This document shows, in pieces, positions 1 through 52,392 of a stretch of DNA of 64,000 bases (positions within the stretch are counted from its first letter, which is position 1; the number at the start of each line of letters is the position of its first letter). A program made the translations under genes and the position numbers. The notes beneath the pieces are model-generated. The model was not told the DNA's origin. It worked only from the letters and a program-made list of their open reading frames with translations, and ran no database searches. Origin of the DNA: Hemiscyllium ocellatum (Eukaryota); NCBI RefSeq assembly GCF_020745735.1, contig NC_083402.1, positions 68,710,004-68,774,003 of the forward strand, read 5' to 3'.

Positions 1-753
1 TGAGCGGTTCCCTGAGCAGACTGTCGTTTAGCAGAATGCCTCATCACCAGAACTTTCCAACAAGCACCAAGACATGAATTGGCTGGTGGTAAGAAGGGCT
101 CTGCCTGTGAGGTCCTTTATGCACGCCTGGACTCTCAGCCACACCGCACGCTGCCCTCGAAGCGGCTGCGGGGGGATGAGACTGTCACACACCTCCTTCT
201 GGAATGTGCCTAAGCAGAAGAAGTCTGGAGAGGAATGCAGTGGTGTTTGTCGAGGTTCGTCCCGAGCAGCGCCGTGACGCGGGACTCCGTGCCACTTTAT
301 GATCCCCAGGACGCACACAGAGACAAACATCAACTGTGCATGGAGGATCATCAACTCGGTGAAGGACGCTCTCTGGGCGGTCCGAAACCTGTTGATCTTC
401 CAGCTGAAGGAGTTGACCCCGACTGAGTGTTGCAAACTGGCACATTCCAAGGTCCAGGACTACGTGTTGAGGGACGTGCTGAAGCTTGGGGCAGCTGCCA
501 CCAAGGCACGGTGGGGAAAGACCACCGTGTAACATCTGCCTGTCTGAGAAGAACAGGGGGCCCACGCAGTCATTTGGGCTCTGCTGATGCCTCAGCTAAA
601 TATATGGATATATGATTGAGAAACATACAGACCTGTATATATGAACGATAAATTCTGAACTCTGTATGCAAATGTTTATGTATGAATGGCATAACCAACT
701 GTACAGACCATCAATTTATTTTATGAATAAAGTATATTTTTGAAATAAAAAAA
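1..753 (+). mobile_element. Tx1-clade (L1-like) non-LTR retrotransposon, 3' end (ORF2 C-terminus, 3'UTR, A-tail)
   Basis: Frameshifted ORF2 C-terminal peptides (...CPRSGCGG...; CAWRIINSVKDALWAVRNLLIFQ...ARWGKTTV*, stop at 532). Highly similar to the copies at 41.0-41.8 kb and 45.8-46.5 kb. AATAAA at 726, A-tail ending at 753. Confidence 0.9.
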
Positions 754-1475
754 TTGTATCTGACATGTGAGCTGTGCAAGGTTACCTTATGAACTCTCCA
801 ATTAGCTCAGATTGGTACCTCTTTATGATAAGAGTTTATCTCGCTAGCAGGTGCCTAACTCGGCTAGGTATGTTTTTCCCACCTGATGAATGGGCCTGTG
901 GGAGTCATTAGTCAAGCATACACAGACCTGTCAATTAACTTTTCTTCCTTACGAATTATTGTCTTTCACTGTTACCTGTCTAATTAAGAACATGCAGTGC
1001 TTCTGTAAACTCTTGTATAAAGGAAGCCACTTTGTATCAGTGCATCGGAGTAGCCTGCTGGGGCACTTGAAGACCTGGTACCCTACTCTCCTAGGTTATT
1101 AGAACCTAGCTAGTTTAGTTTATAAGTATCAGTGTTATGTTGTAACAGTGATGCTGAGTGAATAAAGGGATGACTAAAATTAAACTAATCTGTTTGTAGG
1201 AGTTTTTTTATTCCAGATTTCCAAAGAGTACGATCTCCGGAACGAACCAAGAGAGAGGCTTTACAGGTCTGAGTCCACAAGAGATTGCCTGGGCTGTCAC
1301 AAATCTTACTTTAACATATCTGTGTGAATGAAGTGATTGAGAGTGGAATACCAATCATCAGAATCAATGTACAAAATTATTCAAGATCAAAAGAAACTTT
1401 GCAGAAATAGACTGAACACAAAATAATCAAGAATCGTTAAAAAACAGTAATTCCAAGATTTAAAACAAAAACTCA

Positions 1476-1604
<129 letters not shown>

Positions 1605-4600: not shown

Positions 4601-7600
4601 ATATGAAAACAATGTCTTCAGCGAGGTAAATGGGACTCAGCAGATAAACAAAACATGCTATTGATGATTATGCTATTTTACTGACATCTTCCCTTGACAT
4701 TTTTTTTGTTGTTTCTCCACTAGTCCCATAAAACCAACTTTTGTCTGGCATCTTGCTCCTGCCTTCCACCCAATCACAGACTCTTCCACCCAATCCTCCC
4801 TCCCACTGCCTACGCACTTTTGATTGTATAGATATCTTTAATTTTTCAGTTTGACAACTTGAAAAAAGTTAACTTGCTCCCTCACCATAGATAAAACCTG
4901 AACTGCATTTTTCAGAGTCATGATAGCACGGAGGCAGCCATTCAGTGCATCCTGGCCACGTAAATCACATTAATACCATTCTCCAACCCTCCCCCCACAT
5001 CCCTGATTATTTTTCCTTTTTCAATATCCAAACTTTTAAAATTTTAATATTTTATAGCACAAAAGGCAGTTGGTCTGTCCATTGCGTCTCCATTAGCCAA
5101 AAAAATGAACTGCCCAACCAAATCCTACATTCGGCACTAGGTCCTAAGTTTTTCAGGTGCACATCCAGCCGCCTATTAAAAAGGTTTCAGCCTTTGTTGC
5201 CTATTCAGACAGATTTTCAGACTCTGCCACCCTCCAGGTGAACATGTTTTTCCTCATCTCATCTGTAATTCCTTTACAAATTCCTTGAAGTCTACCCAAC
5301 TAGGACTCTCCCATCTGCTCTATCTAGGCCTTTCACCTAATGAAATAAAGTCTCTCCTCAAGCTTTCTCTGTTCCAAGAAAATAACACCAAACTGAGTCT
5401 TTCCTCATGGCTGGGATTTTTCCATTCTGTATGCTAAGTGCGATTACATGTTTTCTGTATTGAGGGAACCATGGCTGCGTGCAGTACATAACGCATGATT
5501 AATTAATGTTGTATATACCTTCAGCATACCGGTGTTCCTCTGCCCTTTGCTTCAGCTGATAGAACAAAGTATTCCATATACCCTTTTAAATCGCCTCATC
5601 AACACATCTAGCTTGAGGTCCCTGTGCACATTCGCTCAAAGGTCCGTTACTGCCTCAAAACCTCCCTCAAAACTGTATTGTCCATTGCTTTTTTTGACTT
5701 TTCTGAATACATCACCTCAGACTTCTGGATGAGTTCCATTTAACACAAACCTGCCTACCTGGTCAATCAACTGATATTCTCCTGCAGACAATACCTCACT
5801 ATCAAAAACGTGGTCAATTTTTGTGCAACCTGCAAATTTCTTGATCATAGTCCCTGCACCTGCATTCAAGTCATTAATATACACAACAAACAGAAGGGAC
5901 GCAGGACTAAGTCCTGTGGAACATCACTGGAATTGGCCTTTCAGAGGCAACAACACCCATCAATAATTAAACTTTGTTTTCTGCCACCAGGCCAATTTTG
6001 TATCCAGCTTACAATATTCCCTTGCATCCCAAAAAGGCCTTTTTGTTTAAACAAAACAGACTGCTACTTGGGGCCTTGTCATTAGTCCCACACAAATCCA
6101 CATAGACTATCACAATCAGTACCCTCACTAATCCACTTTATTACTTCAAGAAATTCAACCAAGTTAGACACCACGTTGACTGCCCTCAATTAGTCCATGC
6201 CTTTTAAATTAAACAATTTATTTTGTGCTTCAGAATTCGTTTCAATGATTTGCCTACCACAAAGGTTAGACTAAATAACTACAAGCCAGACAACCTATGA
6301 ACAAAAAAGTAATAACAGCAGTCCATCAATTCTATGACATACAGTGAGGATCCACAATGCAGTGACAAGTGACCAATTATGATAAGAACCACCACAAAAT
6401 AATCAGAGACATACCCACATCTTCTGCCTCTACACATTAGCTTTTTGTTTTTAATGGTACTCTTACTTCCTCTTACTCAATGAACTGAAAACATCTTTGG
6501 GTTCACCTGATTTTTAATTGCCAATATTCTTTTACATCCTCTTTGCTTTCCTAAATTCCTTTTTGATTTTAACCCCACACCTTTTATAATGATGCTCAGA
6601 ACTGCACCCTCTCTTGTTGCTATATGCTGGCCAAAAGAAGATTGTTCCACGTCTATCACATCAACATTCTGCCCATTAAACTTGAGGGAGTTAAAATAAT
6701 TCATTATCGTCCTGATGTTTTTCCATTTTTCAGAAATTTATCCCCATAATTTGCTCGATCCCCTGACAGTTTGGTCGTCTAAAAAAGACTTCCAGTACTG
6801 TGACAGAATGGTTTTTTAAAAAAAGGTTTTTAAATCAATGCATATGGTCTCCTTTAATGATTTCCAGTATTTTGTTTTTAATTTCACATTTCCGGCATAC
6901 TCAATATTTTGCATTACAGGTAGAAAATCCTTTATCTGAAATTCTGAAATACAAAACTGTTTTCATTTTTTTCTCCATAACAGGGTTGTTTGGCGTGCAA
7001 ACATTTTAACCAACTCAACACCCACTCGACCCACATTACTCAGCTGTGACGTGGTGGCATGGTCCAGGACTGGCAGGCATCAATTCTGTTTCAGTGCTCA
7101 TAATAGTCACATGTGCGCCTGCAGCTCAGTAAAATTTTTTTTATTTCAATGTGAAAATGCTATTTATTCCAAAATCCCAAACATTCTGAAATCCAGAAAC
7201 CAGCTGACCACAAGGATTTCGGATTTTTGGTCTACCTGTACCTAGTTGGATTTAATAAGTAGTTCTAGGGTTCAAACTAATAACGTTTCTTTTAACAAAC
7301 ATAGATTTGCTACAATTCAAACAAAATGCCTCAGCTCTAAGCTGACAGTAGACAAGCAGAAGGTTGGAAGAACAGGCCAAGCAAAACCCCAGTTATAACA
7401 TTTAATAATTTTGCAGCATGTGCTGGACACAGTGATTGAAGTTTTCAGCAGTATCATTTAAGTTCTCAGAGTTGCCTTTCTGAAGCAAAATGGGCATTTT
7501 GTTTGAGATTCCCACTGAACACCAATATCCAACTATGGAGTTTGGTAACTGGATCATAAGCCAAAACCAATTTTAATTTCTGAAAAGAAAAGGAATTCTA

Positions 7601-8714
7601 CACAGACCAGATTATTTCCAATGAATTACATGGACAGATACTTTTCAATGTGTTAATTGAAGGCAGCATAGACTATTGACTTAGAGCCCTTACGTTGCAG
7701 TGGTAGTTTCAATACCTTAGAGCCAGAAGCCAGGGTTCAAGCCACACTGCAGAGGTGTGTCATAACAGTTGAACATATTGTTTAAAAAATATCTAGACAA
7801 GAGCAGTCCAGACAGGAACCAAGATAATCTTCTTGTAGAGGCAGAGGCTTGGCTGAGTTACTAAATGAGTACTTTACAGGTGACTACATTAGCAATGAGA
7901 ACTCTACTAATTTAGTAAAAAGAGGAAGCAGTTGTGACACTGAACAGGATAAAAATAGATAAAGAAGGATTAAAATGTTAAGGTTGGCCAGCCTCAAAGC
8001 AGGAATGTCACCTGGTCCAGAGGTGAAGCAACCTAGATAACTGACAGAAATAAGATGAAAACTGCAGAGTATCAAACCTGAGTCTTACAATCCCTTGGGC
8101 ATAAGATTGGTGCAACAGATGGAGTACTCAACTTTACATCACATTCAAAAAGAAAATCGGATAAACCTGGCTTTTGGAGGGCAGTCAGCCAAATATCATT
8201 CGTGGAGACAATAATCTGGATATATTAAATTGCAATTTGAAAACCAAATAGGCTAATAAATGTAGGTCAACAGATTTATTAAAGATGGAATGTGCTCAAT
8301 CAACATGTCAAGAGTTAAAGTTACAGAGGAATGATGGCTGCATTACAGCTGATGCTCCATGTACTGACTTTTAAAAGGTAGAGTTCCCACAATGGACTTG
8401 TCAGCAATATTGAAATTCATGAGATTCAAGGGCTAATAGACGTAAAGAACACAAAGACAGTATGAACAACTCCCTCGAGAATGAAAAGGAATGGTGCTCC
8501 CCATGGCGCAACACTAGGACAGCCGCTACTACTATTAATGACTGATGCAAACTTTGAAATAATACATTGTAAGTGATACAAAACTTGGAAATGAAATAAT
8601 AAGGACAGAACAATTTCAGAAGAACATAGACAGGCTAGTGAAAAGGTCATGTTCATGACAGATGAAACTTAAGTTAGACCGAATGTGAGGTGAAACACTT
8701 TGGTGAGGAGAATG

Positions 8715-9370
8715 TGTTATGGTCTAGGCCAAACCCCCCCAAAACATTTCAAGAAAGTAGCCTGGACCATAACTTTACTAGGTATTTTGAGCAAGGGTGA
8801 GGTGGATATTCCAGGAGTGATGCACCTGACCTAGCCACTTGGTTTTAAACAAAACAGAATTTATTTGCAAGATTACTGAATGAAACAAAAAAGACAGTAG
8901 AATATCTTAGCCTATCCGACAACCCAAAGGATTATCCAAAATTAATGATACTTTTGCATCTACTTGCAACAAATCCCATAAACACCCCTGGATAAAAAGA
9001 AAAAGACAAACACAGGTCTTACAGGAGAGACGTCAGAGAGAGAGAGAGAGAGAGATGGCAGAGAGATTCAGCATTGAACACCTTCTTCCATGCAGCTGTT
9101 TCTTCGACCAGCAGCCTCAAAATTGGCTGCTTGCTAAAACCAAACCAAAACAGAGTAAAGCTGAACTGGGAGAACGGACACCTTTCATTGTACAGGTGTT
9201 TTTTTTTTATATAAAACTTTAAAAGACTTTTGCCTAACGTAGTATCTGTTAGCTATAGTCAAATTGGCCCGAAAGCCCCTCCAAACTAGTCCCCTTACTG
9301 GTGTCTTTAGGACCACTGAAAAAAAAAACCAAAGACAACATAACCTAGTTAAAGCAGCACCATCGTCATA
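8715..9370. mobile_element. Putative solo LTR inserted into an old CR1 fragment
   Basis: About 655-bp block with TGTTATG...CGTCATA ends, flanked by AATG/AATA. CR1-like sequence resumes on both sides (tggtgaggagaat | aagaaaagacaacatgaactaaattgtacc). Internal (GA)n tract. Confidence 0.45.
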
Positions 9371-12300
9371 AATAAGAAAAGACAACATGAACTAAATTGT
9401 ACCATTTTTCAAGCAAGAGGAGATTTGGAGGCATGTTTAAACAGTCAAAACTAAAATTATAAAGGCTGGTTTAAAAGCATTTGGAAGATTTAGCTTTAAG
9501 AGAGTGTACAGAAGGAAAGAAATTATGCTAAAAATTTATAAATGCTGGAATATGGCATTCAATTCTCAGCATTGGACTGAGTGCCATAAACAGGCCTGAA
9601 AATCTCAGATTATTTGCCAGGATCAAGAGGCTTCAACTATGTGGATAGACTGGAGAAATTAAGATTGTTCTCGTCAAAGCATAGGTTTAAGAGGAAATCT
9701 AATACAAGTTTCAAAATCATGAAGGGCTTTGCAGTGAAAATAAAGGGAAACTGTTTACAGTAGAAGAGCTGGTAACCAGGGAACAAAGTTAGATGACTTA
9801 CAAAAGAACCCAAAGTGACAAAAGCAAACTTGACATATATTATGTTGTATGTGATCCAAAATGCATACTCAAGCAAAAATAAAACCTGCCAATGCCAGCA
9901 TTAAATACATTCAACGATAGAGATTCTGCAACCCTCTCGGGTAGATAATTCCAAAGATGTACAATCACTTGAGTGAAGAAATGTCCAATCTTGAATGATT
10001 GGGCTTTAATCAAAAGACTGACTGTGTATTTTGGATCCTCTGACCCGAGAAAATAATATCTCAGTGTCTACCCTAAGACCTTTAGAATTACATACACATT
10101 AATGAAATCAGTTCTCATTTCTTCTAAACTCCAAAAAAAAATTCAATTTATTCAGCCTATCATAGGACCTCAGTTTTATATATATACATCTTTTAATATC
10201 ATGTACATTGGATTTTGAACTAGTGTCACATGGCTTTGATGTGTCTTCAAAAGGATTTTATTCATTAAAGTATTTACAACTATTTCTGTGGCTATAGTGT
10301 TTATTTTCAAACAAAGGAAGAAAGACTTCCTGCAGAGATAGGGATTTTGTTTACGTTGGGAGAGCTTTAGGATTGAACAGAATAAACAATGATGCATGAA
10401 GGTTTCAGTTCAAAGAATTAGAATGGTATTTGGGTTATGGGTGTCTAAGGAAAACACCCACCGAGTCAGATATACAGCACAAAAACAAACCCTTTGGTGC
10501 AATTTGACCATGCCGACTAGATATCCTAAATAAATCTGGTCCCATTTGCCAGCACCTGGCCCATATCTCTCTATACTCTACCTATTCATATAGCTTTCCA
10601 GATGCCTTTTAAATGTTCATTTTGCCATCCCTGCATCCAAGTCATGAATGTAGATTGTAAACAGGCTTATGCCCAAAATGTCAATTGTCCTGCTTCTCGG
10701 ATGCTGCCTGGCCTGCTGTGTTTTTCCAGCACCACATTTTTCAACTCTGGTACTCCTGCATCTGCAGTCCTCACTTTCTCCTCCTTGTAAATAGTTAGGA
10801 CCCAAGGACAGAACCCTGCAGCACCGGTTACAGCTTTCAAACTAGAAAGAGATCCACCTATTCCAACTCACTGCTTTTTGTTGGTTAGCCAATCTTCTAC
10901 CCAAACTAACACATTAACATTAACCATGTGCCATCTTTCTTGATGCATTAATCTCTTGTGCAGCACCTACTCATATGTCTCCTTGCAGGCTGGATATACA
11001 TCTACAGGACCCCATGACCTGCTTTGCTCATTACATCTTCGAAGAACTCATGAATTAGTTAAACATTATCTACCTTTCAGAAAATCATGCTTAATTTATG
11101 GATTGCATTTTGACTCTCCAAATATCTTGTTGCTACCTCCTTAATAATGGATTCCAACAATTTCCCAACAAAATACATTAAACCAATTGATCTATAGTTT
11201 CTACTTTCTGCCTCCATCCATTTCCAAATAACGGCGTTACATTAGCATTTTTCTGTGGACTGGAACCTACCCACAAACAGGGAATACTGGAATACTATAA
11301 CCACTGGATCCATTATCTCTGCTGACACTTCATTTAAAGGCCCTAGGAAATCAGCCATCAGGCCCTGAGAACTTGCATGCCTTTGGTCCCAGTCATTTGT
11401 TCAGTACATTTTCGTGGTAATGACGATTATTTTAAGTTCCTCCTTTCCTCTAATCTCTGCTTACCTGATATTATTGGGATGGTTTCAGTTTCTCTCACCA
11501 TGAAAGCTGAGGCGAAGTATTGATTTAGTGTCACTGGAGTCATGTTCCCCATTATTAACTCCCCAGTCTCATTGTCCAAGGAATCAACATTCACTTTAGC
11601 TATTTTCTTCCTTTACACTTGTTGAAACATTTGCTATCCATCTTGATATTTTGCACTGGTCTTTAACAATTAACCTTTGTTCTCTTTATTATTCTTTTTA
11701 GTAACTTTCAAAGCCTTAAAAGCATTCAAAACCTCCAGCCAGCCATTACTCTTGGCAATATGGGACGTCTTAGGTTTTGCCCTCATGTTATCTTTAACAT
11801 CCATGTTTAGTCAGGGATACTTTTCCTCCTTTTACAAACTTGCTTCGTTGCTGGACTATATTGCAGTTGGAAGGAACTGAATTATCTCCTTAAACGTTTG
11901 CTGCTATTCATCAACTATTTTCCTGTTCAGTCTTTCTGCCCTGTCCACTGAGGGAGAATCTGACTCATGCCAGTGTAATTACCTTTAACACCAGAACACT
12001 AAAATGGAACTCCTATTTCCCTTCCTCAAACTGTTAACACTCATCCCTAGAGGCTATTTTACTACAAGATCATTAATTAATCCTATCTCATTACATAATG
12101 CTAAATACAAAATAAAATGCTCCCTGTTTCCACAACATTTTATTTCTTGGAGCAATCTCTAATACACGATGAATTCTCCAAGGCTAACCTTGCCAAATGC
12201 AATTAATCCAGCATATATGCCTATCACCCATGATTACTGTCACATTTTTCTTACAACCTTCCACTAAGAACTGTGTCTTATACTGTATCTTGGAATATAA

Positions 12301-12887
12301 CTTCTCCCAGAAGTTTACTTCCTTGGCCATTTCATTTTGTTATTTTGCCCAGTTGGATTCTATATCTTGATCCTACCTTGTGTCTCCTGCAAACTAATGA
12401 AAGCATCTGCAGAAGGAAAACATGAGAAACAGCATTCTGATCAGCATATCAACCACCTCAGCAGATTCTGCATAAAAAGAACCACTGACCTGCTTTCCAA
12501 ATTTCGCAGCGTTCATAACAACCATGCTTTTGTTTCCTGTACACACATCTTTGTCTATGATCGACTTTATAATAGGTTTAGAGTTTAACCCAATAGGATT
12601 ATATGCTAACAATTATAATTGTCTCCATGTAGCTCGAATCCATTTACTTGGAACAGCAATTCTTGTTAGGTACAGAAATCCTTCCTGTCATCTTGGTTTC
12701 GAAAATTAGGCAAATTGGAGAATTTTTGTATTTCTATGCAACCTTTAAATATTGGGACTACTCTGGGTTTAGCCGGGCTTGGCTTCCAATGCAGCACCCC
12801 AATAATCACTTCCAACACAAGTATATTTTTTTCTTAAATGTGGAGACCAAAATTGTGCACAGTACACCAGATGAAATAGCAAAGAAA

Positions 12888-13635
12888 ATAAACCAGGCTT
12901 AATGGTAAGTGCCTGGGGAACGGTGCCGAACAAAGAGACCATGAAATGCAAGCTCACAGTTCCTTGAGAGCAGAGTCGCAGGTAGCTAGGATAATGAAGG
13001 TGGTGTTTGCTATGCTTTCCTTTAATGGTCACTGCATTGTGCATAGGAATAGGGAGGTCATGTTGCGGCTGTACAAGATGTTGGCTGGGCCATTTTTGGA
13101 ATATTGCATGCAATTCTGGTCTCCTTCCCATCAGAAAGATGTTGTGAAACTTGAAAGGGTTCGGAAAAGATTTACAAGGATGTTACCGGGGTTGGAGAAT
13201 TTGAGCTATAGGGAGAGGCTGAATAGGCTGGGACTGCTTTCCTGGAGTGTCAGAGGCTGAGGGGCCACCTTACAGAGGTTTATAAAATCATGAGGGGCAT
13301 GGATAGAATAAATAGACAAAGGTCTTTTCCGTGAGGTGAGGAGCCCAGAACTAGAGGGCATAGGTTTAGAGTGAGAGGGGTAAGATATAAAAGGGACCTA
13401 ACGGGTAACTTTTTCAGGCAGAGCATAGTGCACATATGGAATGAGCTGCCAGAGAAAGCGGTGGAAGCTGGTACAAATTCAGCATTTAAATGATATCTGG
13501 ATGCAGATATAAATAGGAAAAGTTTAGATGGATATGGGCCAAGTGCTGGCAAATGGGACTAGATTATCTTAGGATATCCAGTTGGCATGGACAGGCAGGT
13601 CCAAAGGGTCTGTCTCCATGCTGTACGTGACTATG
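12888..13635 (+). mobile_element. CR1 LINE 3' fragment
   Basis: ORF 12946-13260 (LYKMLAGPFLEYCMQFWSP...LERVRKRFTRMLPGL) is the CR1 RT C-terminus; 3'UTR shared with other copies in the window. Confidence 0.9.
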
Positions 13636-13955
13636 TGGTGCTATCAAAATCCTCCACAATTGTATTAAGACTTCATTATATTTTTACTTGCAAGACACTC
13701 TATAATTAAGGACTAGCCCTTTCTCTTTACGGTCTCTGTACTAATCATTTTCTCGTACTTTGTAATAAAATCCAAATGCCATTTACTTTAATTGCTTGTT
13801 ATACCTCCATGGTATGTGTACCTTGTAAGAGTTCATAGAGTGCAAGTTTTACACTTTTAAAAGTGATCTGCTGGTAAACATTCAATACAAGTGGTTTCCT
13901 TTGGTTTTGCTGCACCGTTCTAATATATTTCTTCTGCATGCCAATAATTGTTGAG

Positions 13956-14149
13956 GCTGCAAATGTGTTGCTGGTCAAAGCACAGCAGGTTAGGCAGCAT
14001 CTCAGGAATAGAGAATTCGACGTTTCGAGCATAAGCCCTTCATCAGGAATAATTATTCCTGATGAAGGGCTTATGCTCGAAACGTCGAATTCTCTATTCC
14101 TGAGATGCTGCCTAACCTGCTGTGCTTTGACCAGCAACACATTTGCAGC
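13956..14149. repeat. Perfect 194-bp palindrome (97-bp arms, no spacer) built from a Penelope-type terminal repeat
   Basis: Exact reverse-complement symmetry about 14052|14053. Whole insertion flanked by the direct repeat AATAATTGTTG (13943-13953 and 14188-14198). Confidence 0.95.
14055..14090 (+). ncRNA. Minimal type-I hammerhead ribozyme motif (Penelope-associated); mirror copy at 14015-14050 on the minus strand
   Basis: ATTC-CTGATGA-A-GGGC-ttat-GCTC-GAAA-CG-TC-GAAT: intact core, stem I ATTC/GAAT, stem II, 1-bp stem III with palindromic ACGT, GUC cleavage triplet. Confidence 0.75.
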
Positions 14150-15166
14150 TGTGATCTCCAGCATCTGCAGACCTCATTTTTTACTCGAATAATTGTTGTG
14201 GACCTGCTTTATAAGTATTTGGCATAAATTCCTCAGGTTTATATTCTAAAATGCATTATGATATGAAAAGGCATTACCGGGAAGAGCACTTGAAGCAAGT
14301 TGAGTGTGCATGGAAAAGTATACTGGATAAATTCTCAAAGGGAAACATGTACAAGACAAGACAGAAAGAGTAGGGGTGTGAAAGAGCAGGAGAAGAGTCG
14401 TGTTCTGCACCGTAATATTGTGTCACATAATTCCTACATGATGATTCACAAACATCTCAAGCAAATGTATACAAGTCTATTTAAGTAATTCTAATAGCAA
14501 AGTTAACAATTTAAGAGATATCTCAGAAGGGACGGACAAACCTAGCCTGAAAACCATGTTGCGATCTTACTGAACAGTCAAGAGACTTCGAGAAAATAAG
14601 CAACATGAATCACCTTTCCCGATGAAGTATTTTTTTTATTCAAGTTGCAGCCTTCCACGCTTGGCAACTTGTAAACTGAAAGAAACATTAGAACGCGCTC
14701 CCATACATAAGCAGTTCCCTGCTGTCATCTCCATCGCCCCACCCAACATGAAACCTCCGATACTCCGCACGCCTGTTAAACGAGCGGCAAGCTGTCAGTT
14801 GAAGACCCTGTCCCTACACTCGGAGTGGCGGAGGGGATGTTGCCCCCACTCCCTGGTTTACCCGCCTCCCCATGCCCCCGGACACGGCTGGCGGGTCAGG
14901 CCGAGTTTACAGTCCCCTCTGCAGAGGCCTGCCCGATTCTGGATCAGTGGCGCTGAAAGAGCACAGCAGTTCAGGCAGTATCCGAGGAGCAGTAATATCG
15001 ACGTTTCAGGCAAAAGCCCTTCCTCCTGATTTTCCTGTTGTGTTTTTCCAGCATCACTGATCCAGAATGTGGTCTCCAGCTTCTAGTCATTGTTTTTACC
15101 TGGAGGCCTGCCCGAGCCCGTCTCGCTCCCCCTCCCCCCCACGACCCGATTCGGAGCCCGCCCTTA

Positions 15167-15440
<274 letters not shown>

Positions 15441-16334
15441 ACCAAGTAAAGACAAGCCCTTACACTCTGCAACGGTTTGCATCCAGTTAGTTAAGTACGA
15501 ATTGTTACAAAGTTCCAAAATACCATCACGTTTCTCCATGTCAAGGCTTCGTTACGTAGTTTAAAAGGAGCAATCGTGATTGAAACAAACCTCAACAGTT
15601 TGGTTAAAAATGTATGACAATGCCTTCCTTTCCCCTTCCTAATTCCCGCTTTTTGAACAGATTTTGGAACCGATAAGCTGTTCTACAATAACTTCAACCA
15701 AGGTTGCGTTAAGACAATAGCGAAATTAACACAGGTCATTTCAAGCTCGTGTCATTCTGGCTTCAAAACCATTCCACATGTTTTAGTTATAATCCCTACA
15801 CTGAAAGCCTCATATTGAGGCAATCTTTTTCATAACTTCTTAGGTGGTATGGGCACGGAATGCACTGCCTAGTATGTGTGGATGCGACTTAATTGAGACA
15901 ATCAACATAGTATTTGGTCGTTATTCAATTAGAAACGACGTGCAGTGTGAACGGTCAGGTGAATGGCGCCAAGTCATCATGCTCAAAGAGCTGGTGAAGA
16001 CACGAAGGGCTAAACGGTCTCATCCTATACAGTTCTGTGTTTCACAGTCTTGGAAAAATTGGATAGGTCACAATAATAAGTCAGCCATTTGGCTCATTGA
16101 GCCAGATTTGCCATCACGATGACTTTGATTATGCCATAACATCACTTTGCTGTTTGCGTCCTATAATACCCCCAATTCATTGTCAATTAAGCTGGATCCT
16201 TTTGCCAGTTTGGTTCATTCAATCAATGAGTAGTTAAAAAATACTCAAGAAAAGTACTACAATAAACATTAATTGCAATAATTACATTCGTGTACAGTGT
16301 CAGGAAGCTAAAGCAACATTCCCATTAATGACTT

Positions 16335-17325
16335 AGAATCATAGAGACGTACAGCATGGAAACAGACCCTTCGGTCCAACTCGTCCATGCTGACCAGATA
16401 TCCGAACCCAATCTAGTCCCACCTGCCAGCACCTGGCCTATATCCGTCCAAACCCTTCCTATTCATATACCCATCCAAATGCCTCTTAAATGTTACAATT
16501 ATACCATCCTCCACCTCTTCCTCTGGCGGCTCATTCCATACACATACCACCCTCCGTGTGAAAAAGTTGGCCCATAGGTCTCTTTTATATTTTTTCCCTC
16601 TCATCCTAAACCTATGCCCTCGAGTTCTGGACTCCCCAACTTTGTCTATTTATCCTATCTATCCCCCTCATAATTTTGTAAACCTCTATAAGGTCACCAC
16701 CCAGCCTCCGACGCTCCAAGGAAAACAACCCCAAGCCTGTTCAGCCTCTCCCTATAGCTCAAATCCTCCAATCCTGGCAACATCCTTGTTAATCTTTCTG
16801 AAACCTTTCAAGTTTCACAACATCTTTCCGATAGGAAGGAGACCAGAATTGCATACAATATTCCAAAAGTGGCCTAACCAATGTCCTGTACAACCGCAAC
16901 ATGACCTCCCAACTCATGTATTCAATACTCTGACTAATAAAGGAAAACATACCAAACTCCTTCTTCACTATCCTATCTACCTGCGACTCCACTTTGAAGG
17001 AGCTATGAACCTGCACTCCAAGGTCTCTTTGTTCAGCAACACTCCCTAGGACCTTACCATTAAGTGTATAAGTCCTGCTAAGATTTGCTTTCCCAAAATG
17101 CAGCACCTGGCATTTATCTGAATTAAACTCCATCTACCTCTTCTCAGCCCATTGGCCCATCTGGTCAAGATCCTGTTGTAATCTTAGGTAACCCTCTTCG
17201 CTGTCCACTACACCTCCAATTTTGGTGTCATCTGCAAATTTACTAACTGTACTTCTTATGCTCACATCCAAATCATTTATGTAAATGACAAAAAGCAGAG
17301 GACCCAGTGCCGATCTTTGTGGCAT
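16335..17325 (-). mobile_element. CR1 LINE 3' fragment
   Basis: ORFs 17134-17325 (LGPLLFVIYINDLD...KFADDTK), 16789-17133 and 16413-16604 are successive CR1 RT segments. Confidence 0.92.
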
Positions 17326-18964
17326 TTGTTTTATTATTTATCTCCAACCAATTGGATTCTACATTTTGATCCTCCAAACTGTTATTTTTCACTATGGTAA
17401 TGATAATGTTCTTTAGAAACAATTATTCCATCTCCTGTTACTTTTTATTTTTCTGAACTGCCAAATACCCTTGAATATTTAGTTCTCACCTCTGCTCAAT
17501 TTCATATCATACTCATTTATTTATATAATCTATTTTTCTAATCAACCTGGTCAGAGATGTTTTTACACATCTCTTGAACAAATGCAACTTGGACCCAGGT
17601 CTCAGTCCAGGGGTAAGGACACCACTATTGCACCATAAGAGCCCCCCCTCATTAATTTATATTGGTGCAATTAATTTATCCATTATAACTTAAATAAAGA
17701 ACCTTTATTGTACTATGTTTTATCAATTTTCACTACTGACTTTGTTGCTCATAAATTGTTTATGCACTCTATCCCTTTCCACTTCATTACCTGCATTGCT
17801 AATCTGCACGACTGAGTCATCTTCTCTCAAATTGTCCAAATCTCTGTGCATGAACTCTTCCCTCCGCCCACTATTTAATTTAAAGCTTGCCCTCCAGCCA
17901 TGGTTATACAATCTGTCAGGCAGTACACCAGTCCCAGCGTGCTTCAGGTAAACACTGTACCAACTGTTCTCTTCCTCCAGTCCCTGATGCTGTGTTTCAT
18001 CAATTGAAATACCATTTCACCCTAGCAATCTGCATCATCCATTTAAATCTGATTCTATTTACCCTGTGACAATTTGCATTATGTTCGGATATTAATCCAG
18101 ATATTATTAAATTTAAAGCATGAATACAAAGGTAATCTCCCAGGTTTCACATTTCTTCAGCAGAAACCGTTTTTGGTCTTAGTTGTTGGAATGCATGTGG
18201 ACTATGACAAATGTGTTCATCCCTCTCCAAATTCCACTCCAACCTTGAGCAAAAATTCATAATTCATATCCTGGAATTTGGCAGGCAACATAATCTTTAG
18301 AACCATACTTGCAGCTACAGTAAACAGTACTTATTCCCATTTCTATAATGTCATGTACAACTACATTACTTTATACTCCACCCTATTTTACATGAATGGC
18401 TCCTTGCACCAATGTTTTGTGGCAGTTTGCCCATCCACCCTGCAGTCTCAAACTCTTGTCTACAAAAGTTACAGGAAATCAAATCTAATGGACAACTGCA
18501 AAGGCTAAAGTTCCTATGTTGCTAGATCTCGATTCCCATACCTGTCTTCCTCACCTCCCTGAATGTACAGCAACCAAGAGGTGTGAATACCTTCCCAAAT
18601 TTTGCAAAGCTCAAAGTTCAGCTCATCAACTTCGAGCTGAAGTTCCTTAAGGTGAAGCCACGTAGTATAAATTTGGCTGACAGTGTGAATTGCACTACTT
18701 TCTACCAGTTCCCACATTACAGCTGGAACACATTAACTACTCTTATGTATAATTTACCTAACTAAGTTGAGTTTAGAAACACTAAATTTTTGTCCATAGT
18801 TATACCAAGTAGTTTAACTAGTTTAGCCATACATTTAATGTAACACAATACTGCTTTTAACTATTGCCCATGTTTTAGAGGAATAACATTTTAGCAGTTC
18901 AATCACTTACTTATTCCATTAAAGCTTTGAAAACTCATCAGCTTGAGGCCGAAGTAGAAAAAAG

Positions 18965-39256: not shown

Positions 39257-40671
39257 GTAAGTGTTTCCCTTCAATGAATTCATCATGCTTCTAAATATCA
39301 TTTAATTTTCATTCTGTTTGTAACTAATGGACATTATAGAGAGATTAAATTATCATTTGAAATAATATTTTGCTTCACTTTGGGAGGTGCTGATGGATAT
39401 TTTCTAAACAACCTGTTCAGAGATGTTTTTAAGCACCTCTGGAGCAAGTGGGATTTGAATCAGACCTCCTGGCTCAGAGGTATGGACACTACCTCTGCAT
39501 CATTGCTAAATATCATCAGATTCATAAAACAGAACCCCAGGCTACTGTTCTGGAGATATTGATTTGAATCGCACCAGACGATGGTGAAATTTGAATTCAA
39601 TAGAACCTGGATTAAAAGCCTGCCTGGTCATGATCAGGAAAGCCACTGTCAATTGTTGTAAAACCCAACTGGTTTAGTAATGTCCTTAAGGTTAGGAAAT
39701 CTGCCACCTTACCTGGGCTGGCCTACACATGACTCTGGCAGCCTGTTAATTGCCCTCTGAAATGGCCTAAGCCATTCAGTTGTATCAGACCACTCCAACA
39801 TCTCAAGAAAGGAATGGAAGTTCTCCCCGTGTGGTGCAGATTCGATGAGCCGAATGGGCTCTTTCTGCCCTGTAGGAATTCTCTGATTCTATAACAGCAC
39901 TGTGTCCCCACACACCATGGACAGCAACTGTTCCCCCAAGGCAGTAAGGGATGGGCAATAAATGGTAGCCGAGACAACGATGCCCATAGCTCAAGAATAA
40001 ACAAAACAAAATGCAAGTACATTGGGATTGTTAAGTTACTTTTTGTGTAAAGAAACTCACCAGGAGATAGTTATGAAATGTGCGCTTCCTTTTTCCACGT
40101 TACAGTAATGACTACACTTCAGAAAGTAACTCACTGTCTGTAAAGTAACTCACTGTCTGTAAAGTGCTTTGGCATGTCCTGAGTTCATTGAGATGCTTCA
40201 TACAAATAAAAGTTTTTTTTCTGAATTCATGGTCTAGACATTCATGTATTGGCTGGGCCAAATGACCCTTTTGTATGTTGTACTTGTACGTGCCAAAGTT
40301 CAGATATGAATTGACTGAATCCAAACTGTTTAAATAATTTCAAACATAAAACTAAAAAATATATTCCCACACCAACTGGCATGATAAAAAGCATAAGGGC
40401 TCAGAATCCATGTTCACACCTGGATTGACAGGTTAAAAAAAACACACATTAAGTTAAAATGAACTACTTCTGTCAGGTTTTCCCAGACATAATATGAAAA
40501 GTAATCATGTCTCTTGTTTACTGGAGTAAGAGCTTGGCCCAGTCCAGTCAAGCTGTAGTAAATGGATCCATTTCCTGATTCTTTTGTCCTTTCAGTTTCT
40601 TGGTCATTGGCTTCTTGTTGAGATCAGAATTTACAGTGCAATTGGAAGAAACATCTTTTCCCCTTTCTTTT

Positions 40672-40885
40672 AGAATTCCTACAGAGTGGAAACAGGCCCT
40701 TCAGCTCAACAGGTCTACACTGACTCTCCGAACAGTCTCCCACCCAAACCCAATATGCTATATTTACCCCTGACTAATGCACCTAGCTTACACATCCCTG
40801 AACACTATGCGCAATTTAGCATGGCCAATTCACCTAACCTACACACCTTTGGATTGTGAGAGGAAACTGCAGACATGGGGAGAAT
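40672..40885 (-). mobile_element. HE1-type SINE, 3' half (interrupted by Tx1)
   Basis: Reverse complement of the 3' part of the intact SINE at 52085; continues at 47466. Confidence 0.85.
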
Positions 40886-43800
40886 TTTCTTTTATTTCAA
40901 AAATATACTTTATTCATAAATACTTTGATGATCTATACAACTGGACATGCCGTACATATGTAAACATTCCATTTCTTTGCATACCAAAACAGAGTAATCA
41001 TTCCTATTTACAGGTCGGTATGATTACATTTTGAGCTGAGGTGTCAGCAGAGCCCAAATGACTGCGTGGGCCCCCTGTTCTTCTCAGACAGGCAGATGTT
41101 ACAAGGTGGTCTTGCCCCACGTCGCCTTGGCAGCAGTTGCCCCAAGCTTCAGCGCGTCCCTCAACACGTAGTCCTGAACCTTGGAATGTGCCAGTCTGCA
41201 ACACTCAGTCGGGGTCAACTCCTTCAGCTGGAAGATCAATAGGTCTCGGACCGCCCAGAGAGTGTCCTTCACCAAGTTGATGATCCTCCAGGCGCAGTTG
41301 ATGTTCGACTCAGTGTGCGTCCCAGGAACAGGCCATAGAGCACGGAGTCCTGCGTCACGGCACTGCTCATGATGAATCTCGACAAACACCACTGCATTCC
41401 TCTCCAGACTTCTTCTGCGTAGGCACATTCCAGAATGAGGTATGTGACAGTCTCATCCCCCCCGCAGCCGCTTCGAGGGCAGCGTGCGGTGTGGCTGAGA
41501 GTCCAGGTGTGCATAAAGGATCTCACAGGCAGAGCCCTTCTCACCACCAGCCAAGCCATGTCTTGGTGCTTGTTGGAAAGTTCTGGCAATGAGGCATTCT
41601 GCCAAATGGCTTTGACAGTCTGCTCAGGGAACTGCTCGATTGGATCCGCCCTCTCCTTTTCCCGAAGGGTCTCAAGGATACTACGTGCTGACCACTTCCT
41701 GATGGACTTGTGGCCAAGGTGTTTTTCTTCATAAGTTTCTCCACGAAGGGCAGGTGATAAGGAACGGTCCAACTACTCGGAGCGTTCCGCGGCAGCGAGG
41801 CCAGGCCCATCCTTCGCAACACCGGGGACAGGTAGAACCTCAGTACGTAGTGACACTTGGTGTTTGCCTACCGGGAATCCACACACAGCTTGATGCAGCC
41901 ACACACAAAGGTGGCCATCAGGGTGAGGGTGGTATTGGGTGTACTTTTTCCCCCATTGCTCCGGTCTTTGTACATTGTATCTCTTCGGACCCGGTCCATC
42001 TTTGATCTCCACGTGAAGTGGAAGATGGTCCAGGTGACTGTGGCGGCACAGGTTCTGGGAATAGGCCAGACCTGTGCCACATATAACAATACTGAGAGTA
42101 CTTCACACCTGATGACCAGGTTTTTTCCCGGGATGGAGAGCGACCGTTGCTCCCACCTGCCTAGTTTCTGTCTCATCTTCCTGATCTGCTCCTTGGCGCA
42201 CGCCCCAGCCCCCCCGAACCAAATACCCAGTACCTTCAGGTGGTCAGTCCTGACAGTGAAGGGGATAGAGGATTGGTCGGCCCAGTACCCGAAGAGCATG
42301 GCCTCGTTCTTGCCTCAGTTTACCTTGGCCCCCGAGGCCCGTTCGAACTGGTCACAGATGCACATGAGTCTGTGCACGGACAGCGGATCCGAGCAGAAAA
42401 CGGCAACGTCATCCATGTACAGAGAGGCCTTAACCTGTAGGCCCCTGCTGCCAGGAATAGTCACACCTCTCAGGCTCGCATCCCTGCTGATGGACTTGGC
42501 AAATGGCTCTATGCAACACACAAACAAGATGGGTGAGAGGAGGCAGCCCTGCCTGACTCCAGATCTTACAGGGAAGCTAGCTGATTCCCACCCATTGATT
42601 GAGACTGCACTGACAATGTTGGTGTAGAGCAGTCTGATCCAATTTCCGATTCCCTCCCCAAAGCCCATTTTGGAGAGGACATCCCTCATATGTGTATGCG
42701 ATATCCTGTCAAAGGCTTTCTCCTGGTCCAGGCTGATGAGGCAGGTGTCCACCCCCCTGTCCTGCACGTAGGCAATCGTGACCCTGAGGAGTGCAAGACT
42801 CTCAGAGATCTTCCTGCCCGGTACAGCACAGGTTTGGTCAGGGTGGATCCCAGAGCAGACCTGACCCAGTTGGCGATGACCTTTGACAAGATTTTGTAGT
42901 CTGTGTTTAACAGTGAGATTGGTCTCCAATTTTTGAGTTCCCCCCTCTCCCCCTTCTGCTTGTAGATGAGGGTGATGATGCCTTTCCTCATGGATTCACT
43001 AATGGTACCTGCCTGAAGCAAACTGACATACACCTCCAGCAGGTCCCGGCCAATCAAGTCCCAAAGAGAGGAATAGATCTCGACCGGTAAGCCGTCGCTT
43101 CCGGGAGTTTTATTCTTTTCGAAGGATTCGAGGGCCTTGGTCAGCTCGTCCAGAGATAGCGGCTGGTCCAACCTCTCCCGTGTTCTGTCGTCTATGACCT
43201 CCGTGATAGAGGACAGGAATAAATGGGAGGCTGCGCTGTCGGTCGGCTTCGCGTCATACAGACTGGCATAGAAGGATTTGCTGATCCTCATGACGTCAGC
43301 CTGAGATGACGTTACCGAGCCATCTTCTTCCTTCAGGCTGCTGAGCATGGAGCTCTCTTTGTGCACCTTCTGGAAGAGGAAACGTGAGCACGTCTCATCC
43401 TGCTCCACAGAGCGGACCCTGGACCGGAAGATTATCTTGGAGGCCTCCGAGGCAAAGAGCGAGGCTTGCTGGCCCTTCACTTCCTGGAGATCCTCCATGA
43501 TATCGACCCCCATCGTCTGCAGCAAGAGCAGGTTCTGCATACTTTCCTGGAGCTGGGACAGTTTTCCCCACCTCTCTCTCGCCTCCTGAACACCTTTGAG
43601 GATAAAGAACCTCTTGATGTTCCCTTTTACTGTTTCCCACCAGTCCGCTGGGGACTCAAAGAGGGGCTTCATGGTTCTCCAACCTGCGTAGTCCCTCTTG
43701 AGCTCCTCAATGTTTCCCAGGGTCAACAGCTTTGTGTTCAGCTTCCACGTTCCCTTACCAGCCCACTGCTCATCCTGTAGGCGACAGTCGGCCAGCAGGA

Positions 43801-45776
43801 GGCAGTGGTCAGAGAAGAACACAGGCTTGACGTCGGTGGTTCTGACCGAGAGCATTCGGGACACAAACAGGTAATCTATCCTTGAGTGAATAGACCCGTC
43901 TGCCCGTGACTAGGTGTATCTACGCTGTGCTCCATCTGCAGGGGTGCTGAAGACGTCATGCAGCTTGGCATCTTTAACCATTTCCATCAGGGCTCTGGAT
44001 GTGGCATCCAGTTTACTGTCCCCCCCGCCGGATCGTCCATCTGCATCAATGATACAGTTGAAGTCTCCGGCCAGAATGGCCGGCCTGGACGTAGCCAGCA
44101 ACAGTGGAAGCTGCTACAGGACGGCCAACCGTTCACTCTTATCCACTGGGGCGTACATGTTGATTAGTCTTACGGGAGCTTTTCTGTATTTAACATCCGT
44201 GACGAGGAGGCGTGCGCCCACCACCTCCTTAACCTCGGAGATGGTGAAGTTGCCTCCCCACAACAGGATACCCAGGCCTGAGGAGCAGTTATCGTTGTCC
44301 CCAGACCACACTGACGGCCCATGGGCCCACAAGCTCGACCACCTCCTGTAACTGCTGAGGTGCGGTATCCCACACTCCTGCAGAAACAGGACATCGGCTT
44401 TGACGTTGGTCAGGAAGGCCAGCGTTGAATCACATCTCGCAGCAGATTTGATGCTGCGCACATTAATACTGGCAATTTTAATCCCCATTTCTTTTGCCAA
44501 GTTGTGAGATTACCCGTGTCCAATTGCCGCTGGTCCTGCCCCTCTGGGGTAGCTGTCTGCATCCCCATGCAGAACACGAACTGCTGGACCCTCGCAGCGC
44601 TGAGGTAGCTGTCCAGCTCCTCACTCGGTCCATTTGCCAGCTCCGGTGTCATCGGGCTGCGACCAAGTTCCACGCTGTCTGCTTCTATATCTGACAGCCG
44701 GGCTGTCAGGAGGTCGCTGCTCCCAGTGACCTGGAACTGTGTGGCGGTGGGGCCCTCCTGGCTTTCACCTGGCGGGGGTGGTAGCTTCCCATTGCCTCAG
44801 GAAGTTCGTCCGTTGGTGGGCAGTTGCTGCTCTCCTTTCTCCCCGCAGCACTCTGCCTCTTCTTTTGGTGACGACCCTCCTTACGTCCGTCCTCACCCTC
44901 CGAAGAGCTGTCCGTGTCTTCCCCATGCAGCTGCCTTTTCCCCTTTTTCTGGGAGGTTTGGCGGCCGGGTGGGTTTTCCTCCTCTTGTTTTGCACCAGGA
45001 TCTATTCCTCTGCCTCCTTCTTTCCCTTCTCCTCCTCCTCCGCCTGTCCTGTCGGAGCATTGCTCAGCAGCTGTCCCTCTCCAGTAGCTATCGTCTGCTC
45101 TGCTCCGGCCTGTCCTTCTTTTTGCGTGCCCCCAGACACTGTTCCCTTGCTGGTTTGTGGCCTACCCCCAGCCATCTGCGCGTAGGTGGCGGCCCCACAT
45201 CTTGGGCAGGCCTTGTACACGTGGCCTGCCTCCCCGCACAGATTGCAGTTCTTGACCTCCTTGCTTTCTTTGGTCGGGTGGCCCTCCTTCTTGCAGTTCC
45301 GACAGATCGTGACCTTGCAGTCCGCCGCCATGTGGCCTGACCTCCCGCAGGTTCGGCACACTTTCCCTGCCCTGCATAAGTCAGGTACCCTCTGCTCCCT
45401 CTGATAGCAAAGCTGGAGGGTGGGTGGAGGATGTTCCCGCTGGCATCAACCCTCAGGGTTACCTTGACCTGTCGTTTGCTGGTCCAGATCCCGAGAGGGT
45501 CAACCATGTCAGTGCTTTCTCCCTCAACCTGCATATATCTCCTCAGGAACGTTGGGACATCAGTTGCTGGAACATAGGGGTTGTACATGTGGATCGTGAC
45601 AACCCGACTCCTCTGTGCAGGAAGCACACACAGCGGGACCGCCGACAAGATGGAGAACAGCGGCTCACCTTCCGTTTACTTGAAGACCTTCAGGAGCTGC
45701 TCGCATTGCTTCATGCTCATGAAGGTGACATCGAAGTAGCCTGCCCCAGGGAAATCCTGCAGGCAGTACACATCCT

Positions 45777-47118
45777 TTTTTTTAATTTCAAAATATACTT
45801 TATTCATAAAATAATTTGATGGTCTGTACAGTTTGTCATGCCGTACATACGTAAACATTAACATACAGAGATCAGAATTTATCATTGTTATATACAGGTC
45901 TGTACATTTTTCAATCATATCCCCATATATTTAGCTGAGGCGTCAGCAGAGCCCAAATGACTGCGTGGGCCCCCTGTTCTTCTCAGACAGGCAGATGTTA
46001 CACTGTGGTCTTTCCCCACCGTGCCTTGGCGGCAGCTGCCCCAAGCTTCAGCGTGTCCCTCAACACGTAGTCCTGGACCTTGGAATGTGCCAGTCTGCAA
46101 CACTCAGTCGGGGTCAACTCCTTCAGCTGGAAGATCAACAGGTTTCCGACCACCCAGAGAGCGTCCTTCACCGAGTTGATGATCCTCCGTGCACAGTTGA
46201 TGTTTGTCTCGGTGTCCATCCTGGGGAACAGATCGTAGAGCACGGAGTTCCGCGTCACGGCGCTGCTCGGGACGAACCTCAACAAACACCACTGCATTCC
46301 TCTCCAGATTTCTTCTGTGTCGGCACATTCCAGAAGGAGGTGTGTGACAGTCTCGTCCCCCCCTCAGCCACTTCGAGGGCAGCGTGCGGTGTGGCTGAGA
46401 GTCCAGGCGTGCATAAAGGATCTCACAGGCAGAGCCCTTCTCACCACCAGCCAAGCCATGTCTTGGTGCTTGTTGGAAAGTTCTGGCAATGAGGCATTCT
46501 GCCAAATGACTTTGACAGTCTGCTCAGGGAACCGCTCGATTGGATCCGCCCTCTCCTTTTCCCAAAGGGTCTCAAGGACACTGCGTGCTGACCACTTCCT
46601 GATGGACTTGTGGTCAAAGGTGTTTTTCTTCATAAACTTCTCCACGAAGGACAGGTGGTACGGAATGGTCCAACTACTCGGAGCGTTCTGCGGCAGCGAG
46701 GCCAGGCCCATCCTTCGCAACACTGGGGACAGGTAGAACCTCAGTACGTAGTGACACTTGGTGTTTGCGTACCGGGGATCCACGCACAGCTTGATGCAGC
46801 CACACACATAGGTGGCCATCAGGGTGAGGGTGGGATTCGGTGTATTTTTTCCCCCGTTGCCTAGATCTTTGTACAGCGGGTCCTTTTGGACCTGATCCAT
46901 CTTTGATCTCCATATAAACTGGAAGATGGCCCGGATGACTGCATCGGCACAGGTTCTGGGAATAGGCCAGACCTGTGCCATGTATAATAGCAATGACAGT
47001 GCCTCACACCTGATGACCAGGTTTTTTCCCGCGATGGAGAGTGACCGTAGCTTCCGTCTGCCTAGTTTCTGCCTCACTTTGCTGATAAGCACCTCCCAAG
47101 GCGCACGCCTTCAGATGG
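45777..47118 (-). mobile_element. 5'-truncated Tx1 copy nested inside ORF1 of the full-length Tx1
   Basis: 8-bp TSD CACATCCT at 45769-45776 and 47119-47126; has its own A-tail; ORF 46364-47092 duplicates the ORF2 C-terminus. Confidence 0.95.
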
Positions 47119-47427
47119 CACATCCTCTGCAGCGAACCCACAAGAATCGAGCAGAATCTTCTTGACGAACACTATCCGATCGACCGGTGTACACTCCTCC
47201 AGGGTGACTATCCACTCTGACTATGTTGCGAACGCCCTGGACCGTGGTGCGGGCAGCTGTTGAGGCCATAGCTCTGAGGTTGGCTGGTCTCCGAATTGGC
47301 GTTAGGCCGAAGCCAGCATGAAGATCCGCCAATAGCAGGTCAGCACAACCAAACGATCCTCCAACATCCAATCACAATCCAGTGATGATCTCCACTAGCT
47401 CTGATGACTCGCAACTCGACCCCCGTC

Positions 47428-47464
47428 CTGATAAGAACAGACATTTGATCTTAGCCAAAAGGCC
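47428..47464 (-). pseudogene. U2 snRNA 5' fragment (about nt 11-52, 5-nt internal deletion) fused to the Tx1 5' end
   Basis: Minus strand reads GGCCTTTTGGCTAAGATCAA-atg-TCTGTTCTTATCAG versus recalled vertebrate U2 GGCCTTTTGGCTAAGATCAA-GTGTAGTA-TCTGTTCTTATCAG. Confidence 0.9.
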
Positions 47465-47465
47465 A

Positions 47466-47563
47466 AATGTTCAAACTCCACAGACGGTCACCCAAGGCTC
47501 AAATCGAACCCAGGCCCTTGGTGCTGTGAGGCAGCAGTGTTAACCAGAGCCACTATGCTGCCC
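47466..47563 (-). mobile_element. HE1-type SINE, 5' half (tRNA-derived head)
   Basis: Minus strand GGGCAGCATAGTGG...GGTTCGATT...GTGGAGTTTGAACATT; joins the half ending at 40885. Confidence 0.85.
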
Positions 47564-47974
47564 GTATGACTGCCTGTAAATTTTTCACCTGTAGCCCAAT
47601 CAGATTTAGTGTGATTTGGTGCAGTCTAAAAGCTCACTTCCCTCTGTCTAAGCAGTAGGCTTTCATCCTAATCTGAGGGGAGTAAGGCCTACTGTTTGGA
47701 TGTGAGTGATCTCAATTTGCAAATCAGACATCTGATTGGCTCCTGAATGAGTTTATCAAGTGGAATTCAGTTGTCAGCAGTTTGTTTTGAACCTGATCTT
47801 GGCATTCTTCACCAAGGCTGTATTTTATGATTTTTGATTTGATTTATTTTTGTCACAAGTACTGAAATACAGTGAAAGGTATTGTTTTGTCTGATAACCA
47901 GACAAATCAGACCTTACATAAGTATATCAGGGTAATAGAACAGAATGCAGAATATATTTTTACAGCTACAGAGA

Positions 47975-52084: not shown

Positions 52085-52392
52085 GGGCGGCACGGTGGCA
52101 CAGTGGTTAGCACTGCTGCCTCACAGCTCCAGGGACCTGGGTTCAATTCCCGCCTCAGGCGACTGTCTGTGTGGAGTTTGCACGTTCTCCCCGTGTCTGC
52201 GTGGGTTTCCTCCAGGTGCTCTGGTTTCCTCCCACAATCCAAAGATGTGCGGGTTAGGTGAATTGGCCATGCTAAATTGCCCGTAGTGTTAGGTAAGGGG
52301 TATGGGTGGGTTGCGCTTCGGCGGGTCGGTGTGGACTTGTTGGGCCGAAGGGCCTGTTTCCATATTGTAAGTAATCTAATCTAATCTAATCT
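52085..52392 (+). mobile_element. Intact HE1-type tRNA-derived SINE (V-SINE superfamily)
   Basis: A box TGGCACAGTGG, B box GGTTCAATTCC, central GTGGAGTTTGCACGTTCTCCCCGTGTCTGCGTGGGTTTCCTCC domain, (TAATC)n tail. Confidence 0.93.

Follow-up and report, generated by a model that had tools for sequence, protein, structure and literature searches.

The RNA that gave rise to a LINE copy in the genome of the shark Hemiscyllium ocellatum started with a leader derived from U2 snRNA. The leader lies within the window, that is, the whole stretch of 64,000 nucleotides that was analysed (NC_083402.1, positions 68,710,004 to 68,774,003 of assembly GCF_020745735.1), and it joins the 5′UTR of a Tx1-type LINE directly. 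The copy is an old and degenerate member of a U2-headed family, the founder of which may have resided in a U2 gene and produced RNA by read-in transcription, its descendants dispersing later to other sites.

The structure of the leader was established by comparison with U2 snRNA. Read on the minus strand from 47464 to 47428, it consists of GGCCTTTTGGCTAAGATCAA, then ATG, then TCTGTTCTTATCAG. The first block is identical to U2 nt 11-30 at 20 of 20 positions (47445-47464, minus strand), occurs only once in the window and gave no match in 100 shuffles. The last block matches U2 nt 39-52 exactly (14 of 14 positions; 47428-47441, minus strand), and ATG stands, on the same strand, where U2 nt 31-38 (GTGTAGTA) would be. 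The Rfam U2 model aligned with the leader over U2 nt 11-52 as GGCCUUUUGGCUAAGAUCAA-AUGU-----CUGUUCUUAUC, with the gap placed over the bases that pair with the branch point. The score of this alignment (16.9 bits) is lower than the gathering score because the leader is only a fragment. Together, the exact matches and the Rfam alignment confirmed that a head of approximately U2 nt 11-52 is joined to the LINE 5′UTR, as the preliminary description of this DNA had proposed, and the exact matches also confirmed that most of GUAGUA has been lost between perfect stretches of 20 nt and 14 nt. Judged by the letters, the lesion can be read in two equally valid ways, either as the replacement of nt 31-38 (GTGTAGTA) by ATG or as a G31A change accompanied by the loss of 5 nt (34-38 or 35-39). 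Under both readings, GUAGUA, which pairs with the branch point, has lost its AGUA. The end of the lesion falls at nt 38/39, which is the published insertion point of the Keno and Utopia elements.

The boundaries of the insertion were defined with the help of an intact copy of a tRNA-derived SINE located at 52085-52379. The SINE halves found on either side of the LINE (47466-47565 and 40670-40884) are contiguous in this intact copy, indicating that the unit from 47465 to 40885 entered a SINE cleanly in one insertion event. The sole duplication is TT/ATT, the TT at 40883-40884 repeating the TT at 47466-47467. The comparison bore out the earlier view that the insertion lies outside U2 genes and that both flanks are SINE halves. 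Since the U2 piece is placed within the boundaries of the insertion, it must have been reverse-transcribed as part of the LINE RNA. No U2 gene or further snRNA fragment was found anywhere in the window, and no other small-RNA pieces were found in the 5′UTR of the host LINE. Just downstream of the insertion point, the interrupted SINE (40884-40850) does not contain about 22 nt that are present in the intact copy (compared region 52187-52240), a difference that may be either a subfamily difference or a deletion.

Table 1. Features of the U2-headed LINE insertion and its flanks (positions of the window)
Position	Strand	Feature	Remark
47466..47565	-	Upstream flank: 5′ half of interrupted tRNA-derived SINE	
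47465		One extra T beyond the leader	
47428..47464	-	U2 snRNA-derived leader	U2 nt 11-30, ATG for nt 31-38, nt 39-52
47270..47427	-	Host LINE 5′UTR, 158 nt, up to candidate ORF1 start codon at 47269	Multicopy in contigs, three species
47119..47269	-	Start of host ORF1, shifted frame	47119-47125 is the first GGATGTG target duplication copy
47110..47118	-	Nine filler bases at 5′ junction of nested copy	CCATCTGAA
45776..47109	-	Nested 5′-truncated copy, same LINE family	
45769-45775		Second GGATGTG copy, in host ORF1	
45002..45775	-	Remaining host ORF1, frame broken	ZCCHC3-type RNA-binding domain and CCHC knuckles
41099..44500	-	Host ORF2, several broken frames	AP-endonuclease, reverse transcriptase, zf-RVT
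40885..41098	-	Host 3′UTR	AATAAA and short A-rich tail
40670..40884	-	Downstream flank: 3′ half of interrupted tRNA-derived SINE	

After subtraction of a second LINE copy nested within it, the host LINE is about 5.2 kb long and full-length, with a layout that comprises the U2 head, a 158-nt 5′UTR, ORF1, ORF2, a 3′UTR and a short A-rich tail (Table 1). The copy is old, because every one of its reading frames is broken. The protein domains encoded by ORF1 were identified as RBD_ZCCHC3_2nd (E 4.4e-25) and zf-CCHC (E 6e-9), that is, RNA-binding domains and CCHC knuckles of a non-L1 type; this kind of ORF1 is one that we take to be a mark of the Tx1 clade. The pieces of ORF2 matched RVT_1 (E 1.2e-23), zf-RVT (E 2.5e-10) and, weakly, Exo_endo_phos (E 0.0057), and ORF2 thus combines an AP-type endonuclease, whose match is the weak one, with a reverse transcriptase and a C-terminal zinc-binding domain, as do Tx1 elements. 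By this set of proteins, the host LINE is classified as Tx1-type. The nested copy runs from 47109 to 45776 and contains the 3′ 1.33 kb of the element (part of ORF2, the 3′UTR and an A8 tail), which is 87% identical to the 3′ end of the host LINE and has the same orientation. It is located inside host ORF1, flanked by a 7-bp duplication (GGATGTG) and with 9 filler bases at the 5′ joint. The element had been presented earlier as a full-length Tx1; this holds once the nested copy (47109 to 45776) is removed, but the element is not uninterrupted, ORF1 being split by that copy. Contigs of three species connect 45771 straight to 47123-47147, that is, without the nested copy, and therefore the segment 47110-47427 represents the true 5′ end of the family. 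The insertion point of the nested copy in the family's own ORF1 is GGATGTG/TACTGCCTGCAGG, and the use of this site may reflect a self-targeting preference. Separately, one contig from another run carries the LINE tail beside a variant of that ORF1 site.

Searches with the ORF2 protein retrieved shark relatives, including a protein of Cetorhinus maximus with 70% identity. The closest relatives from outside sharks are about 31-34% identical and include LINEs that reside inside U1, U2 and 5S gene arrays. Keno is a U2-gene-specific lineage of the Tx1 clade (Kojima & Fujiwara, 2004, cited in PMC4494074 and PMC4640811), in agreement with what had been stated in the preliminary description, and Keno and the unrelated Utopia have identical 3′ junctions, after which the downstream U2 sequence begins at nt 39 (PMC4640811). 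The shark LINE resembles Keno in its Tx1-type composition (APE, RT, zf-RVT and a CCHC ORF1) and in the presence of U2 sequence at the edge of the element, and the lesion of its head ends precisely at the 3′ junction of Keno (nt 38/39). Unlike Keno, the shark copy does not lie in a U2 gene, and its tail is followed by SINE sequence instead of U2 sequence from nt 39. Among the relatives from gene arrays, an environmental contig (ENA ctg81134, 1-18007) holds an array of genes for U2, U1 and 5S, and every one of them has a LINE next to it or within it. One Tx1-type LINE of this contig shares 31% identity over 328 aa (E 4e-51) with the piece of shark ORF2 and is inserted into U2-like sequence in such a way that U2 nt 1-30 lie upstream and U2 from nt 23 lies downstream, nt 23-30 being duplicated. 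A different element interrupts a second U2 gene of the contig at nt 39. This element was considered as a Keno-like candidate and discarded, given that its match to the shark ORF2 was weak (25% over 137 aa) and that it gave no endonuclease hit; it is probably of the Utopia type. The 3′ end of this element reads GATAAGAAC, which corresponds to U2 nt 42-50 in reverse complement. Another Tx1-type element in the same contig ends right before a stretch that aligns with U1. In a 10.6-kb TARA contig, two tandem Tx1-type LINEs precede a partial U1 gene, whose first 52 nt (10565-10616) form the end of the contig.

The distribution of the leader was analysed in sequencing runs and their contigs. Summed contig depth in the bin 47366-47456 reached 400-9,400 in four runs, compared with 0-10 in the unique flank 47639-47700. 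At the level of short words, two of the three sampled 31-mers of the interval 47400-47465, which two not being distinguished, were present in 20 runs that belong to five organisms and ten studies. Each 31-mer of this interval spans either the joint between the 5′UTR and U2 or the ATG lesion, and therefore none can derive from a true U2 gene. Many of the positive runs are small (41-300 M letters), and a single-copy locus would not be expected to appear so regularly in such small data sets. The occurrence of diagnostic words in many runs of five organisms thus indicates that the leader is a heritable trait of the LINE family and no private accident, in accordance with the earlier idea that the head is general beyond the copy at 47428-47464, and the ATG lesion itself is likely to be common to the family. 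Protein searches with the ORF1 piece and with an 86-aa ORF of the 5′ region found no relatives, and exact scans of metagenome contigs with the lesioned head gave no match.

Several explanations can be considered for the origin of the leader. The U2 piece might belong to the copy at 47428-47464 alone, as a one-off chimera that acquired the lesion after insertion, and a single copy has its 5′ end inside the window, as such a scenario would have it. A U2 head restricted to one copy is contradicted by the diagnostic words, which recur across five organisms in 20 runs, often of very small size, and the chimeric joint is not unique to one insertion, as it would be in a one-off template-switch chimera. 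By these sequence data, this scenario is very unlikely. A different possibility, to which about an even chance can be given, is that the leader arose at the target. The founding copy is inferred to have resided in a U2 gene, at the canonical Keno insertion site, where a bottom-strand nick at nt 38/39 and a top-strand nick at nt 52/53 would have generated a 14-bp target duplication, as is assumed for Keno, leaving U2 nt 1-52 as the upstream flank. The small lesion would stem from imprecise sealing at the 38/39 nick, U2-headed LINE RNA would have been produced by read-in transcription from U2 +1, and the descendants would have dropped U2 specificity and spread to other sites. That the lesion ends exactly at nt 38/39 points to a scar left by an endonuclease or by integration, the latter being our preferred reading. 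Both the end of the lesion (38/39) and the end of the head (nt 52) could be accounted for by a single integration event at the canonical site. The Tx1-type LINE with U2 nt 1-30 upstream in the environmental array could illustrate, by analogy, how a U2-headed co-transcript arises. Against an origin at the target, snRNA promoters are poor at producing long polyadenylated RNAs, template switching is directly precedented in the clade, and none of the three insertion sites of the window resembles the U2 target.

Alternatively, the Tx1 reverse transcriptase may have jumped from the LINE RNA to U2 snRNA and copied nt 52 to approximately nt 11, after which the chimera became a master. All heads would then descend from this chimeric master, and the lesion would be an ordinary later mutation or a slip of the reverse transcriptase. 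Such template switching keeps an appreciable, if minor, share of the probability. It is the published account for the U1 and U2 heads of the crocodilian Tx1-Mar LINEs and of SINEU, and the passages of that paper on these families report 26 SINEU-2 copies with independent 5′ additions of 3′-truncated U1, as well as U1 heads in families related to Keno, which itself targets U2 (Kojima, 2015; PMC4494074). Moreover, chimeras between snRNAs and L1 are well documented in mammals, and the shark head is shortened at both ends as the crocodilian heads are. What template switching leaves unexplained is that the lesion ends at the Keno/Utopia nick (38/39), a coincidence estimated at about 1 in 20, and that the head stops at nt 52, a position internal to the RNA rather than its 3′ end. 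The two landmarks of the head provide a testable discriminator between read-in from a target-resident master and template switching by the reverse transcriptase.

The preliminary description had gone further and envisaged a master element in a U2 gene, transcribed from the snRNA promoter, in which the loss of GUAGUA had been selected for splicing safety. This full model is compatible with a family-wide head and with the location of Tx1-type LINEs in U2 sequences that keep U2 5′ parts upstream, as in the environmental array, but a 42-nt U2 fragment that contains neither the Sm site nor stem-loops IIb-IV is unable to form a U2 snRNP. Therefore, the bare GUAGUA hexamer in a LINE leader is no credible competitor for branch sites and no plausible threat to splicing, and the position of the lesion fits an integration scar. 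The full model is accordingly considered improbable, and the concept of a head disarmed as an adaptation to splicing is not supported; the loss of the branch-point-pairing bases would be a by-product. If the lesion brings any benefit, it is, speculatively, more likely to lie in freeing the leader of a U2-type cleavage site than in splicing safety. With regard to transcription, the PSE and DSE of snRNA genes sit upstream of +1. Because of this, the leader carries no snRNA promoter, and it is therefore a passenger in daughter copies, which need an internal or flanking promoter.

Returning to an origin of the leader at the target, a U2-targeting ancestor can be proposed more tentatively, with considerable doubt, as the source of a leader that would keep both founding nicks and in which the scar would have destroyed the U2 target. 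Copies bearing such a head would be immune to U2-specific endonucleases, either its own or those of Keno and Utopia, and this immunity could have aided the escape of the family from a low-copy target and its spread genome-wide in several shark species.

A U2-headed Tx1 LINE at a non-U2 site is already known in kind, and the shark family is a new member of this group. In the passages of Kojima (2015; PMC4494074) that deal with them, crocodilian Tx1-Mar families group with Keno and have a Mariner transposon as their target; U1 heads are described for Tx1-2_Crp and Tx1-4_AMi and a U2 head for Tx1-11_Crp, SINEU is similarly headed, and these heads are attributed mainly to template switching. As in Tx1-Mar according to that account, the 5′ end of the shark Tx1-clade family derives from a 3′-truncated U1 or U2 segment, here from U2, and its copies are found at non-snRNA sites. 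The U2-derived 5′ terminus was observed directly for the copy of the window and is supported indirectly, at the level of the family, by contigs and 31-mers; of the copies outside snRNA genes, the host LINE occupies a SINE, whereas ORF1 of the family itself harbours the nested copy. The differences from crocodilian Tx1-Mar and SINEU, as far as these are described there, are the shark host and the targets, a SINE and the own ORF1 versus Mariner-N4 in crocodilians. In addition, the shark head, compared here with the published description of the crocodilian heads, is interrupted by a lesion whose end coincides with the insertion point of Keno. Mammalian snRNA/L1 chimeras are independent one-off events, mostly formed by full-length U6 and 5′-truncated L1 (Buzdin, 2002; Garcia-Perez, 2007; PMC11838501). 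The shark element shares with them a sense snRNA piece 5′ of a LINE in a single insertion, whereas it combines a short U2 fragment with a complete 5′UTR and is inherited by the family. The R2 element of 28S rDNA offers a further parallel, in that the co-transcription model outlined in PMC4494074 assigns it no promoter of its own and a transcript that begins in the target gene, as is modelled for the shark element. However, the upstream rRNA is removed from the R2 transcript by processing and R2 remains faithful to its target, whereas the shark leader was retained and carried to new sites.

With the shark family, the known range of snRNA-headed Tx1 retrotransposons comes to include cartilaginous fishes in addition to crocodilians, and the snRNA head would then be an old or a recurrent trait of the Keno-related lineage. 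The family is also relevant to the question of how a LINE with strict target specificity can escape from a low-copy target. It represents no new kind of system and lends no support to a function related to splicing.

The three insertion sites present in the window were compared with the U2 target, and no likeness to it was found. At two of these sites (40850-40884 and 45745-45775), CTGCAG followed by TTTCC is located 12-13 nt downstream of the 3′ junction, the letters being TTCTCCCCATGTCTGCAGTTTCC at the SINE site and GGATGTGTACTGCCTGCAGGATTTCC at the ORF1 site. With n = 2 sites, this common arrangement could be due to chance or to a weak target preference. Finally, a third copy of the LINE family, truncated at the 5′ end and cut by the start of the window, occupies positions 2-753 on the plus strand; its identity amounts to 92% with the nested copy and to 85% with the host LINE.
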